Assembly: GCA_002794465.1 (NCBI GenBank)
Contig: MTSL01000174.1
Coordinates: 36,759 to 44,333, forward strand
Source of the DNA: Paramicrosporidium saccamoebae KSL3
Lineage: Eukaryota > Fungi > Cryptomycota
Reading direction: 5' to 3'
DNA length: 7,575 nucleotides
The position numbers and the translations under genes are program-made. Shown one piece after another: positions 199-7,575 of this stretch; positions within the stretch are counted from its first letter, which is position 1, and each line of letters opens with the position of its first letter. Under the pieces are notes generated by a model. The model was not told the DNA's origin, did not search any database, and was given only the letters and a program-made list of their open reading frames with translations.

Positions 199-1140
199 AT
201 GACTTTTTTAACAACTCTTGGAGCAGGAGTTCTCTTTGTTGCTGTCTATAAATTAATCAGCTTCGTTTTCCGTCTTTTCCTCGTCGCCCCCACCAACGTA
301 TTCCCTTCTGTTAGGTCTAATTTTTAGTGGAGCAGATATGGGGCCAAGAAGGACAGCTGGGCCATTGTGACCGGCTGCACTGACGGTATCGGCAAGGAAT
401 TCGCCCTTCAGCTCGCCAAAAAGGGCCTCAACATTATACTCGTTGCCCGTAATGCCGAAAAGTTAAAGATGACACGCGATGAAATCCTCAAAGACGGCGG
501 CAAGTGTGAGACGCACGTATTGGATTTTGCGGGACCCGCCAACGAGGCGATTGAAAAATTCACAGCAACTTTAAAGGGAAAGACAGTGTCGGTGCTGGTC
601 AATAATGTGGGCATTAGTCACGCACATCCCGAATATTTTACTGAGACGGCTTCGGAGACGATTGAGGCTATTGTGACTGTAAACATTATGAACACACTGC
701 TGCTCACCCGCTCCATCCTCCCTGCCATGGTGCAGAACAACAACGGACTCATTCTCAATCTTGGTTCATTCGCCGGAGAGGTGCCCACTCCACTGCTGCA
801 GACATATGCAGCCAGCAAGGCCTTCCTCAAGCATTGGAGCAAGGCCTTGGCCGCCGAAGTGGGTCCTCAGGGAGTAAATGTACAGCTCCTCAACACATAC
901 TTTGTCGTCAGCAAGCTGAGTCGTCGTAAGCGGGCATCCATGATGATTCCCACCCCACGTGACTATGTCAAAGCGGTACTCCGTTCCGCAGGACAATCCG
1001 ACTTCAGCACCCCCTATCCCTCCCATGCAGTTTTGTGTGCCCTAATGGAGCTGATCCCCGAAGCTGTCTTGGCCAAGATTAATCTTGCTCAGATGCGCGC
1101 CACCCGCCAAATAGCGCTGCAGAAGGCGAAATTGAACTAA
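199..1140 (+). CDS. IFA38: Very-long-chain 3-oxoacyl-CoA reductase (KAR / 17beta-HSD12-like SDR), 303 aa; join(199..297,328..1140)
   Basis: Hydrophobic N-terminal anchor MTFLTTLGAGVLFVAVYKLISFVFRLFLV. A 30-nt intron 298-327 (GTATTC...CTAAT...TTAG) carries an in-frame stop; splicing gives APTN|WSRYGAKKDSWAIVTGCTDGIGKEFA (TGxxxGIG Rossmann motif). Also NNVG, catalytic YAASK and a C-terminal KxKxx (KAKLN) ER-retrieval-like motif. Confidence 0.9.
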
Positions 1141-1153
1141 CTCTTTGCAGTTT

Positions 1154-1159
1154 AATAAA
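1154..1159 (+). terminator. AATAAA polyadenylation-type signal of the reductase gene
   Basis: AATAAA 13 nt after the stop at 1140. The same hexamer follows three minus-strand genes (1681-1686, 4256-4261, 6938-6943). Confidence 0.55.
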
Positions 1160-1185
1160 TAACTTGTTGGCCGGGATTGCTGAAC

Positions 1186-1661
1186 ATGTCCGCGGATGAC
1201 AAGGTAGAGGCGCGCAGGCGGATTAAGGAAATTATGGCGCGTCCCGAATTGGAGCCGGTGCAGACAGAGTTTTCACGAATTCCCCTATATGGTAGCAGAC
1301 ATTTTGGACTGTGTTTGACGACTAGCAATTCTGGGTGGAGGATCCATGTACTTTATGGTTGACGTGGGCCGTACGTCATTATGGTCGTTATATAATGGGT
1401 CTAGTCCGACGAGGAATGATGGGAACTGTCAACAGACCTGCCATGTATCGCGTGGGCGGCTTGGCGCTTGGCGTATTATGCGGACTACAGATTGGTCTTT
1501 ACCGCATGCGCAGTCTGTACCAGCAGATTGATCCCAACAATACCATTCGTGCCGAGCTGGAGACGCTCTTCAAAGCTGCCCGTGGATCCGGTCCCTGTCC
1601 CGTCTCAGCTGCTGAGACGGAGGAAAAGAAGAACCAATATGGCGATGACTTGAATCCATGA
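1186..1661 (+). CDS. Hypothetical 135-aa protein with two Gly-rich hydrophobic segments; join(1186..1291,1326..1370,1405..1661)
   Basis: Two 34-nt GT-AG introns (1292-1325 GTAGCA...TTGAC...TAG; 1371-1404 GTACGT...TAG) join three frames into one ORF: MSADDKVEARRRIKEIMARPELEPVQTEFSRIPLYAILGGGSMYFMVDVGLRRGMMGTVNRPAMYRVGGLALGVLCGLQIGLYRMRSLYQQIDPNNTIRAELETLFKAARGSGPCPVSAAETEEKKNQYGDDLNP. No family recognised. Confidence 0.7.
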
Positions 1662-1680
1662 GGTTGAAAGTAAAGACTGC

Positions 1681-1686
1681 TTTATT
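1681..1686 (-). terminator. AATAAA polyadenylation-type signal of the inositol monophosphatase gene
   Basis: TTTATT on the plus strand, about 43 nt downstream of the minus-strand stop at 1729. Confidence 0.5.
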
Positions 1687-1728
1687 GGAAGCCGGGTATA
1701 TCATAAGATGGCTCGCACAGTATCAATT

Positions 1729-2660
1729 TCATTGCAATAGATGTATGATTTCATCAGCGACGGCCTTGCAGCTTACTGAAATGACCTCCCCTTTGTACAA
1801 ATCAAAGACGTCCTTTCCATCGTAGTCAGTAACATGTCCACCGGCTTCGCGGACAATTGCGACAGCAGCACAGATATCCCAGCATTTAATTCCCTTTACA
1901 AGGAATCCATCAACTCTGCCACAGGCAGAGTAACACATTCCCAAGGCTGCTGAGCCCATCATACGGATCTAAAACGGTCAGCAGGGTTACTGAGAGTTGT
2001 ACGCTGCGAACATGACGCATTAGAAGCAAATTGTCCCGAGAAGCATTTTCAATCTCTTCATAATTGGTCGTGAATTCAGTGATTAGGAGACACTGGCTCA
2101 ACGACGCAACTCCTCGGCTGACACTGATGGGCTGATCATTGAGAAAGGCGCCGTATCCAGTGGCGGCAGAGAACATTTCATTTGTGATTGGATTAAAGAC
2201 GACCCCAAGAGCTGGAATTTTGTCAATAGCTAATCCAATTGCAATGCAGAAATTTGGTAGTCTACGACATCCATATGATGCGATCGAGTTTACCCGTGAA
2301 CAAAGTTAGTAGTCCCATCAATTGGATCAACTATCCATGTGGGAGCGTCGGGAATCCCACTCCCTGCTACATGAGTCTCCTCTCCTATAAATCTAATTCG
2401 TCAATTTCGTCTCATCAGGCATACTTGTGTCCAGGAAACTCCTTCCTTAGGCGTTCCTCAATAAACGCTTCAATAGCACGGTCAGTTTCCGTGACCAAAT
2501 CCTGTGCGCATGTCTTGCTTTCCACGCGTTTCGGCTGTCGGAATGCCGTGGCACTCATCTTCCCCGCCTCGGCCGCAATCTCCTTGGCCGCTTTGAGACA
2601 TTCTACACTTAGATGTTTCAATGCGTTATTACTAGACAAATCAACAGTTTCCGCCACCAT
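1729..2660 (-). CDS. Inositol monophosphatase (IMPase), 277 aa; complement(join(1729..1968,2003..2261,2294..2392,2425..2660))
   Basis: Introns 2424-2393 (32 nt), 2293-2262 (32 nt) and 2002-1969 (34 nt), all GTA...TAG, restore [41 protein letters not shown] and WDICAA, the diagnostic IMPase motifs. The paralog (INM1/INM2/IMPA type) cannot be assigned. Confidence 0.92.
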
Positions 2661-2936
2661 TGCAGCAAAAATAACTGATGCAAAGGGTTGCAACACTTTA
2701 ACTATTGCGACTCTACGTAACCAATAGTTGACGGGCGGTGAGTAATTCTAGTATTGTCACTTTTGGCATTGATAATAGAGCCCAATTGAATATGATTTGT
2801 AAGGTTAGTTAATACGACCCTTTATTAGAATCCATGGTCCGTAGTTACACCATCTCAGATTGGTACATTTTGACTTGAATAGGGGCAGCGCGCGGTCCTG
2901 TTGATAATCAAATTGGTCTTATTAAAGTAAACGGCA

Positions 2937-2944
2937 TCTTTATA
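2937..2944 (-). promoter_or_regulatory. TATA-like TATAAAGA facing the IMPase gene (left palindrome arm)
   Basis: Mirror image of the element at 3121-3128; function is inferred. Confidence 0.35.
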
Positions 2945-3120
2945 GGCTGCCATCCTCAATACGATGATAATGGATTGTGGTATCGCCATCGGGATCGAAC
3001 CCTACAATAATAAGTGGATAATACTTAACAGACCTGTTAAACAGCATCCACTTATTATTGGAGAGTCCGACTCAGATAGCGGTTTCACAATCTAGTCTGG
3101 TTATATTAAGAATGGCCACC

Positions 3121-3128
3121 TATAAAGA
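3121..3128 (+). promoter_or_regulatory. TATA-like TATAAAGA facing the dehydrogenase gene (right palindrome arm)
   Basis: 117 nt upstream of ATG 3238; function is inferred. Confidence 0.4.
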
Positions 3129-3237
3129 AGCCATATACTTTAATAGGGGTGAGCACCCATCAACAAGGCCTTTTAACGGGGATTACAACAATGCATTTAA
3201 AAAGTAATGTTGGTCAATTAATCGTTTCGTCGATATT

Positions 3238-4162
3238 ATGACTGGCATTCGTCGGGTTGCAGTGGTAGGTGCCGGTCAAATGGGCGGCGGTATTGCCCAG
3301 ACAGTCGCTGCTGTAGCAAAACTGCCCGTTACTCTATTTGATGCCAGTGCAGAGCAACTAACTCGACAGAAATCATTCATTGGTATGCCGTGCATCCGTA
3401 ATAATCATTGTTGATTCCTTGCTGAGTAAGGATGTGAATAAGCAAAAGATTAGCGAACACGATAAGAAGGAGGTTCTTGGTCGCATCAGCACAACCACAT
3501 CTCTAGCCGATCTCGCAGAAGCCGACTTTCTCATTGAAGTACCTCGGTGCAATTATTGAATGTAGGCAATTTCCGAAGACTTTGTCCGCAAGGAGACCCT
3601 GTTCAAGCAACTGGGAAGTGTTCTGAATAACCGCGATGCCATTGTCGCCTCCAACACGAGCTCCATCTCCATTACAAAATTGGCTGCTACATATCGCCAT
3701 CCGGAGCGGTTCGTCGGCATGCATTTCATGAACCCGGTGCCTGTAATGCGACTCGTTGAGCTAATCTCGGGATGTCAAACCAGCGAAGCAACGATGGCCA
3801 CTACCAAACTGTTGGCCGAGGCCATGGGCAAGACGACCACCGCGTCCAAAGATGTTCCGGGATTCATTGCCAACCGAATCTTGATGCCGTATATCAATGA
3901 GGCTGTATACACTCTCTATGAGGGAATTGGAACCCGCGAGGACATTGACAAAACAATGGTACTTGGGACCAATGTCCCAATGGGTCCTCTCAAGTTGGCG
4001 GACTTTATTGGTTTGGACACTTGTTTGGCTATCACCCGGGTCCTCCATCAAGAGCTTGGCGATTCCAAGTACCGACCATGTCCGTTGCTAGTCCAGTATG
4101 TGAATGCCGGATGGTTGGGCAAGAAGGCCGGTCGAGGCTTTTATGATTACTCGAAACTATAA
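3238..4162 (+). CDS. 3-hydroxyacyl-CoA / 3-hydroxybutyryl-CoA dehydrogenase (Hbd/PaaH/HADH family), 288 aa, C-terminal SKL; join(3238..3382,3414..3538,3566..4162)
   Basis: [15 protein letters not shown] (GxGxxG), ADFLIE|[54 protein letters not shown] and [14 protein letters not shown] are all present. Intron 2 (3539-3565, 27 nt) is canonical. Intron 1 (3383-3413) appears to end in TG; see findings. Confidence 0.92.
3383..3413 (+). other. 31-nt intron with GTATGC donor and apparent non-canonical TG acceptor
   Basis: Read-through hits TGA at 3412. From the GTA donor at 3383 no AG up to 3480 restores the frame. A junction after TTG at 3413 gives [15 protein letters not shown]. Confidence 0.6.
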
Positions 4163-6030: not shown

Positions 6031-6502
6031 ATGCTCCGAAATATCACGAGGTTTTCGTTGTGTAGCAACAGTAACATTCCATCGAATAACTGACTGCAGG
6101 ATTCATGTCAACCATTGGAAAAGGAAGCGTGGCCAAGCTCGCCAACTTGGAGCAATTTGCCACCGTTCTGCAGTCCACCGACCCTGTGCTCGTCGACTTT
6201 TCCGCCGTGTACTTTTTATCAAAGATTGCTTATAGTAGTTGGTGTGGACCGTGTCGGGTGCTATCACAGGTGCTAGATCAGCTCTCCCCAAAAAACACAA
6301 AGGTCCACTTCCTCAAGGTGGATGTGGATCAGTTTCCGACATTGGCCACCCAGTTTAATGTACCCATAATCGTACGGCGTGGATGGTTTAGGTTTCGTCA
6401 GTGCCCTATGTTGTCATGTTCAAAAACGGCAAGCCGGTCGATTCATTCATGGGAGCACAAAGCGCATCTGCTGTACAACAATTCTTGGACAAGAATAACT
6501 AA
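6031..6502 (+). CDS. Thioredoxin with predicted mitochondrial presequence, 126 aa; join(6031..6070,6100..6208,6239..6359,6392..6502)
   Basis: Introns 6071-6099 (29 nt, GTAACA...CTGAC...CAG), 6209-6238 (30 nt) and 6360-6391 (32 nt) give MLRNITRFSLCSNRF-MSTIGKG...VLVDFSAVWCGPCRVL...FLKVDVDQFPTLATQFN|VSSVPYVVMFKNGKPVDSFMGA...DKNN. Canonical WCGPC and cis-Pro (VP) motifs are present; Trx3/TXN2-like by its presequence. Confidence 0.88.
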
Positions 6503-7406: not shown

Positions 7407-7562
7407 CCCCGCTGTATTACCGGTAATTGTTTTGACTTTCCTAATTGGGAATCACCGTTGGATATGATTGGTAGATAGGCGACTTTTGTTATATTACCGT
7501 TATCACCGTTGTCATGCTGGGTAGTGCAGCATAGCAGATTGCGGATTGGTCGACCAGGAGAA

Positions 7563-7575
7563 GGGGGGGGGGGGG
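7563..7575 (+). repeat. G13 homopolymer at the window end
   Basis: Directly visible; could be a sequencing or contig-end artefact. Confidence 0.8.

Follow-up and report, generated by a model that had tools for sequence, protein, structure and literature searches.

In Paramicrosporidium saccamoebae KSL3, a rozellid parasite of amoebae, the gene for a 3-hydroxybutyryl/3-hydroxyacyl-CoA dehydrogenase (Hbd/HADH type) is interrupted by a 31-nt segment that begins with GT and ends with TG. Judged by its own sequence and by its counterparts in related genomes, this segment is a real, ancestral U2-type spliceosomal intron with an ancestral AG end, and its terminal TTG is a derived state that departs from the ancestral acceptor by one base (T3412) or by a 2-nt deletion. 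Our best guess, which ranks first among the readings considered and is held with somewhat less than even confidence, is that T3412 is real and that the acceptor is weakened or dead, as a recent or heterozygous crippling allele. Positions refer to the window, that is, the whole 7,575-nt stretch analyzed (GenBank assembly GCA_002794465.1, contig MTSL01000174.1, positions 36,759–44,333, forward strand).

The dehydrogenase gene occupies 3238–4162 of the plus strand, where both introns also lie. Its three exons encode 288 residues ending in -SKL, followed by the stop codon TAA (4160–4162). Exon 1 (3238–3382) contains the Rossmann motif and ends with QKSFI and the first base, G, of an Asp codon; exon 2 (3414–3538) opens with AT TCC TTG CTG AGT AAG, ends with DFLIE, and aligns without gaps to relatives and Protein Data Bank (PDB) entries; exon 3 spans 3566–4162. 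Intron 2 (3539–3565, 27 nt) is canonical, reading GTACCT...TGTAG, and is common to three relatives (L004, L092, and L094), where it is GT–AG. The gene is intact at 288 residues only if the 31 nt at 3383–3413 are spliced out. The resulting product matches two Pfam domains over their full length, both above the gathering score: 3HCDH_N (PF02737; 190.5 bits, positions 2–179 of 180) and 3HCDH (PF00725; 119.4 bits, positions 1–97 of 97). Its best NCBIfam match is 3-hydroxybutyryl-CoA dehydrogenase (PRK07530/PRK05808), and its PDB matches are the Hbd structures 9fbd, 6aa8, and 4kug (E values of 1e-81 to 1e-89). With Hbd/HADH enzymes of known structure (PDB 9fbd, 6aa8, 4kug, and 1f0y), it shares the two full-length domains, the GxGxxG Rossmann motif, and a gapless alignment to solved Hbd structures across 283 residues; it differs in being eukaryotic, in having two ultrashort introns and a C-terminal -SKL, and in scoring below the NCBIfam bacterial equivalog cut-offs (390.5 versus 420).

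The C-terminal tripeptide -SKL (4151–4162) is a canonical peroxisomal PTS1 signal, the protein has no N-terminal presequence, and the dehydrogenases of the relatives end in -SKL, -SKI, or -SKV. This C-terminus hints that the enzyme may be peroxisomal rather than mitochondrial.

Exon 1 closes with TTC ATT G at 3382, followed by GTATGCC (3383–3389), the same seven nucleotides that open intron 1 of the neighboring IMPase gene on the minus strand (2424→2393), an intron that ends in TAG. The dehydrogenase intron (3383–3413, phase 1; GTATGCCGTGCATCCGTAATAATCATTGTTG) reads GTATGCC...CATTGTTG and is followed by ATTCC of exon 2. Its donor fits the local consensus (GTAnnn), and its removal restores the reading frame at a site common to orthologues, as for a U2-type intron; the terminal AG of that type is missing, since no AG was found within 3383–3413 and the segment ends in TTG (3411–3413) where relatives have TAG or CAG. 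The deviant base, T3412, corresponds to MTSL01000174.1:40170. A candidate branch motif, ATAAT (3401–3405), would put the branch A at 3404, at a distance of 9 nt from the intron end, based on motif match; an alternative motif, GTAAT (3398–3402), lies 12 nt from the end. The TTG has T at −3, a purine (A) at +1, and the next AG ending 13 nt downstream, which is the sequence context of TG–AG tandem acceptors.

The unspliced frame runs into TGA at 3412–3414, and the first AGs downstream of the intron (3425–3430), a GAG ending at 3426 and an AAG ending at 3430, are out of frame with the donor at 3383, as are the AGs ending at 3442, 3448, 3453, 3466, 3469, 3472, and 3489. With splicing from the normal donor to any of these nine AGs, translation stops at codons 50–72, so that the 76 nt after the intron end hold no in-frame AG; the nearest AG in frame with the donor has its G at 3506, and its use would delete 31 residues. 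The preliminary description had noted the donor shared with IMPase, the read-through stop, and the out-of-frame AGs as far as 3472, all of which we could reproduce and, for the AGs, extend to 3489.

To rank excisions with the frame left open, all segments starting at 3250–3412 and ending at 3411–3538 were enumerated, which yielded 3,734 distinct stop-free products, and these were scored with a hidden Markov model (HMM) of full-length homologues. First of the 3,734 came the 31-nt excision 3383–3413, with 486.6 bits. Among excisions with canonical ends, the highest scores went to GT–AG at 3390–3426 (473.9 bits) and GC–AG at 3387–3426 (471.8 bits), the latter being rejected for its lower score; the Pfam score of the product of 3390–3426 was 183.0 versus 190.5 bits. 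In-frame AG acceptors at 3506 or later gave lower scores or large deletions. The top-ranked junction can also be written as 3381–3411 (TG..GT) or 3382–3412 (GG..TT), with the same product, and has a GT donor only as 3383–3413. A 1-base indel or frameshift in place of an intron was likewise rejected: either frame adds about 10 residues found in no homologue, and the relatives have the intron. The spliced product aligns without gaps to PDB 6aa8, which reads FINKNLSKLVKKGKI in this region, in line with the clostridial Hbd segment given in the preliminary description. The first rank among 3,734 excisions, together with an orthologous intron at the same position in eight relatives, makes intron 1 real rather than a chance occurrence, and the claim of a real GT–TG intron in an intact dehydrogenase gene is thereby upheld.

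Homology-guided curation, which took over from an exhaustive GT–AG search on GenBank gene spans that proved too permissive, gave 12 introns in the window, including intron 1 of the dehydrogenase gene. With these introns removed, the ketoreductase, IMPase, mitochondrial carrier, and thioredoxin products all have full-length Pfam matches. Intron lengths are 27–43 nt (median 32, n = 12), so the suggestion that 31 nt is typical was correct. All introns but one (11/12) are GT–AG, the exception being intron 1 of the dehydrogenase. The other 11 use GTA donors in ten cases, as had been stated for all of them, and GTT in IMPase intron 3 (GTTCGC); their acceptors are TAG in ten cases and CAG in one. Neither GAG nor AAG was found as an acceptor among the 25 canonical introns curated (11 in the window and 14 in relatives), which bears out the view that a GAG acceptor would be rare. 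A TRAY-type branch-like motif lies 7–9 nt from the 3′ end in six of the 11 canonical window introns, and the 9-nt spacing from ATAAT to TG in intron 1 equals the modal branch-to-3′ end distance in the window. Apart from its penultimate base, 3383–3413 is, at the level of sequence, like all other introns in the window.

The window also contains a thioredoxin intron (intron 1, 6209–6238) that ends with TATAGTAG, a NAGNAG-type tandem acceptor permitting introns of 27 or 30 nt, both in frame. The products would read ...DFSAVSWCGPC or ...DFSAVWCGPC, the latter of which fits the usual spacing before the WCGPC motif.

Protein searches led to syntenic metagenome contigs of related rozellids with 64–86% amino-acid identity, which carry IMPase, ketoreductase, and carrier genes beside the dehydrogenase. 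The junction between exons 1 and 2 is covered in eight lineages, and all eight have an intron at the same phase-1 position with GT–AG ends. Where the P. saccamoebae window reads ATT G|GTATGCC...CATTGTTG|AT TCC TTG CTG AGT, the closest sampled relatives read ATC G|GTATTG...TTTGTAG|AT TCG TTG TTG AAC (L004/L093; 86% identity, two samples with 97.5% identical DNA) and CTT G|GTGAGC...TTATAG|AT TCA CTA CTC TCA (L094; 86%). The others read ATT G|GTACCC...GTCTAG|AC TCG TTG CTG AGC (L002/L003), ATT G|GTAGCT...CATTGTTTAG|AT GCG CTT CTG GGT (L009), ...CCGCAG|AG GGC (L005–L008), ...GTATAG|AA TCG (L090), ...TTCTAG|AG TCC (L091), and ...GAGCAG|AG TCG (L095/L096). Hence, the acceptor is TAG in the closest relatives and most others and CAG in two lineages, and TG was seen at this acceptor in none of the eight, unlike in tandem TG–AG sites, where the TG is conserved. 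The flanking codons are conserved, with differences mostly at synonymous positions. The relative L092 (88% identity in exon 3) begins inside exon 2 and is uninformative on intron 1. A scan of JGI metagenome contigs gave only matches of at most 64% identity with uninterrupted genes, which are uninformative on the intron.

The same-site GT–AG intron in eight lineages indicates that the intron is ancestral and that its ancestral end was AG. The comparison with sister species that the preliminary description had called for thus makes the TG derived. TTG could have come from an end like the TGTAG of L004 by an A>T change at 3412, or from one like the TTTAG of L009 by loss of TA. The preliminary description had hedged between genuine TG use and an error or mutation of TAG, and this inference is supported: since AG is ancestral and TAG is found in the nearest relatives, a one-base change of TAG is the origin under any outcome. 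Including intron 2 and six further orthologous introns in the IMPase, carrier, and gene B genes of the relatives, which are all GT–AG, every one of the 14 curated introns of the relatives ends in AG, so that the tally for the species and its relatives is 25 AG ends and one TG (n = 26). This consistency in 25 of 25 other introns implies that TG is generally not tolerated in the clade. The side idea that very short introns are defined by length and tolerate non-AG ends finds no support in these counts, yet the TG of intron 1 does sit at the modal branch-to-3′ end distance.

Two observations concern the relatives themselves. The dehydrogenase gene of L094 (1086–2068; sample DRR438482) has a third intron, GTACCC...GAGTAG, inside FIANR|ILMPY, which P. 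saccamoebae does not have; its presence in so close a relative (86% amino-acid identity) implies that intron gain or loss is ongoing in the clade. In L004 (211–897; protein P0003), the automatic gene call translates through the terminal TAG of intron 2 (...HKLQAISEDF) as if it were a sense codon, which is an artefact of calling an intron-bearing eukaryotic gene as a continuous open reading frame (ORF) and not a variant genetic code.

The remainder of the dehydrogenase gene is under evident constraint. The TG-spliced protein aligns without gaps to the full spliced proteins of seven relatives. Compared with its nearest relative, L004, dN is 0.095 and synonymous sites are saturated (pS = 0.82). 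At near-invariant columns, P. saccamoebae has no private substitutions versus 2–7 in each relative. No stops, frameshifts, or relaxed constraint were found outside the acceptor, so the further lesions expected of a unitary pseudogene are missing. This lack of decay implies that the gene is still functional or that any inactivation is very recent; as a rough estimate, a disabling change would date back less than about 1% neutral divergence.

The public gene models of this region need revision. The GenBank model of the dehydrogenase is wrong: it has 228 residues, jumps from 3327 to 3566, and lacks 60 residues, with the first half of the NAD-binding domain gone (Pfam score of 112.9 bits, profile positions 85–179 only). 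These residues were lost because the predictor had to find a GT–AG path. At least three neighboring models (IMPase, ketoreductase, and a small conserved protein; window 199–2660; L001 5525–9423) likewise contain errors, caused by overlooked introns of about 30 nt. The IMPase has 241 residues in GenBank versus 274 after curation (introns 2393–2424, 2262–2293, and 1969–2011), the small conserved gene (1186–1661) has 88 versus 135 (introns 1292–1325 and 1371–1404), and the ketoreductase is joined in one 543-residue model with the RapGAP gene upstream of it, by way of a 671-nt “intron”. A minimum-intron reconstruction of GenBank coordinates from gene spans also indicated that the GenBank models are themselves unreliable. 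These cases suggest that annotation error is systematic in the P. saccamoebae proteome, a resource in wide use for phylogenomics and gene-content comparisons of fungi and microsporidia. That the public dehydrogenase model and several neighbors are wrong through missed ultrashort introns is a firm by-product of this work.

Two further features of the window were recorded. The divergent IMPase/Hbd intergenic region contains a 226-nt imperfect palindrome (2920–3145; arms 2920–3031 and 3034–3145, 75% complementary) with a single-strand DNA fold of −44.4 kcal/mol (z = −6.9), which occurs once in the 21-kb locus and in none of the relatives. Its minus strand includes a tRNA T-arm-like stretch, GGGTTCGATCCC, but no match came from ARAGORN or Rfam, either there or, in tRNA and Rfam scans, anywhere in the window. 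At the window end, a run of 14 G (7562–7575) directly precedes an N run in the scaffold and has the look of an artefact of a contig ending at a gap.

In the reading that we place first, T3412 is taken as a real base and not as a consensus error. The 5′ splice site and the branch would be recognized normally, and the second step would meet no AG at the usual 7–9 nt from the branch. Most transcripts would then retain the intron or join the next AGs (3426 and 3430), leading to a frameshift and a stop at about codon 52, with TG ligation, and hence the normal 288-residue enzyme, left to a minority at best. By analogy with yeast and human data, retention or use of the GAG at 3426 or the AAG at 3430 would be expected; AG>TG acceptor mutations in human genes activate neighboring AGs and are not spliced at TG (PMC2374985). 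The change must be very young, because the coding sequence is otherwise pristine, and it would most simply be one allele of a diploid, picked by the assembler, or a recent or in-culture mutation. A diploid genome is reported for P. saccamoebae, in which 3,832 heterozygous SNPs passed filtering, and the assembly is a single-haplotype Velvet consensus (k = 53) of HiSeq 2000 reads with q ≥ 20 at 50–59x (PMC5701793). A one-haplotype assembler would select a heterozygous allele half the time; with reads of that quality at that depth, the consensus is unlikely to be wrong in unique sequence, and an allele picked arbitrarily is plausible. That T3412 is real, its zygosity, and its splicing outcome are what we infer from these data. 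Poly-A RNA-seq was generated for the species; the only accession given in the paper is the GenBank one, and the word “intron” is absent from the text (PMC5701793). Exact look-ups of seven window-encoded proteins or ORFs and of a 160-residue exon-3 ORF gave no match to independent sequence of the species, and homology searches with the full-length protein, exon 3, and the exon-1 ORF returned from the same species only the GenBank model (99–100% identity). If the allele is crippled, this genome-reducing parasite has lost a beta-oxidation-type enzyme very recently or in the heterozygous state.

What speaks against a crippled allele is that the intact, maximally conservative coding sequence is equally predicted by a functional TG acceptor, that the TG has the context of working TG sites (T at −3, purine at +1, AG 13 nt downstream, modal branch distance), and that rough priors for a young null through this very base are not above those for a rare functional GT–TG intron. 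A functional GT–TG intron, with the T real and fixed and exon 1 joined to 3414 at TG efficiently enough for enzyme supply, is accordingly a serious if doubtful reading. Its stricter form, in which TG is the sole productive acceptor, used constitutively and set by the distance of ~9 nt from the branch in a 31-nt intron, seems possible but rather unlikely as well; the AG 13 nt downstream may possibly license the TG, by analogy with human TG–AG tandems. Efficient use of TG would fit the first-ranked, gapless product, the fully intact gene with the most conservative sequence in the clade, and a downstream choice limited to GAG and AAG, acceptor types seen in 0 of 25 canonical introns; moreover, GT–TG makes up ~0.02% of introns in a transcript-corrected fungal annotation (PMC11590231). 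It sits poorly with the human cases, in which TG is used only where a productive AG lies nearby as the other option and mutants from AG to TG are not spliced at TG, with the out-of-frame position of the partner AGs here, and with the retention of AG in all 25 other clade introns, which implies selection against TG; none of the relatives has it. A sole TG acceptor would mean that the second catalytic step in ultrashort introns can do without the A of AG, would be a natural counter-example to the human-derived rule that TG works only beside a productive AG, and would make this 31-nt intron a compact substrate for studying 3′ splice site choice by branch distance. The ranking is soft, as rough prior counts overlap within an order of magnitude, and at the sequence level a crippled allele, TG splicing, and a consensus error are fitted equally well, since all three predict an intact, conservative gene.

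A consensus error, by which the genome would have TAG (or TTTAG) and the T (or the 2-nt loss) would be a Velvet assembly mistake, strikes us as improbable. A single-base change would restore a canonical intron like those of the relatives (TGTAG in L004/L093, TTTAG in L009), all else about the gene is normal, and the sequence is a draft short-read scaffold, with the window identical to MTSL01000174.1 and therefore no independent check on it; set against this are the depth of 50–59x with reads filtered at q ≥ 20 at every base, the location in unique coding sequence, where the site itself falls in neither a repeat nor a homopolymer, and the improbability of a substitution error in the majority of reads there. 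Use of the canonical pair 3390–3426 (GTGCAT...CTGAG, 37 nt), giving a 286-residue enzyme with ...SFIGMPKDV..., is very unlikely. It is in frame and stop-free and retains full-length Pfam domains, and GTG donors are known in relatives; its product, however, scores 12.7 bits below that of the TG junction, a strong consensus donor (GTATGC) 7 nt upstream would have to be skipped, a GAG acceptor would be required, and the DSLLS codons, conserved in all eight relatives, would be discarded, with a net loss of two residues, all of which agrees with the earlier judgment that this alternative is inferior. U12-type introns, spliced by the minor spliceosome, have the 5′ splice site (G/A)TATCCTT and the branch site TCCTTRAY 10–15 nt from the 3′ end, and the class tolerates non-AG ends set by branch distance. 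Measured against this consensus, TCCGTAAT (3396–3403) matches the branch site at 6/8 positions, ~12 nt from the intron end, but positions 5, 7, and 8 of the donor GTATGCCG depart from the rigid 5′ consensus, the ordinary TAG-ended IMPase intron opens with that donor too, known U12 introns are far longer than 31 nt, and the orthologous introns have no U12 motifs, which leaves this reading scarcely credible.

In size and layout, intron 1 falls among the introns of other compact genomes. To our knowledge, the AG end is invariant in the ultrashort introns of microsporidia and Rozella. Those introns resemble the P. saccamoebae intron in their length of about 25–45 nt, strong GTA donor, and branch near the 3′ end (PMC6349667), and they differ in that intron 1 is an exception to the AG end within its own genome sample. 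Human TG 3′ splice sites, known from 36 genes, are always alternatives at most 28 nt from an AG and never the sole acceptor (PMC2374985). The human TG–AG tandem sites (Szafranski et al. 2007, Genome Biol 8:R154; e.g., GNAS) resemble the present case: a GT intron of U2 type meets the next exon at TG, flanked by a pyrimidine at −3 and a purine at +1, and an AG follows no more than 28 nt on (13 nt in P. saccamoebae). There, TG is always an alternative to a productive AG and is conserved across vertebrates, whereas in P. saccamoebae no other acceptor would be productive, the frame is lost at the partner AGs, and all eight relatives have AG. A further parallel is human disease mutations from AG to TG (cited in PMC2374985), in which the invariant A at −2 of an otherwise normal, conserved intron is changed and cryptic AGs lie close downstream. 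These are documented losses of function with RNA evidence, in contrast to the P. saccamoebae case, which is known from sequence and has introns of about 30 nt with about 8 nt from branch to 3′ end. A transcript-corrected annotation of Ganoderma lingzhi lists GT–TG for 22 of 92,107 introns (PMC11590231), the same pair of ends in a fungal-lineage genome, likewise missed by standard predictors with wrong gene models as the result; G. lingzhi is a distant fungus with normal-sized introns, and its GT–TG class has transcript support. Viewed beside these systems, the GT–TG end or acceptor lesion in the P. saccamoebae dehydrogenase gene is another instance of a known rare kind, not a new mechanism.
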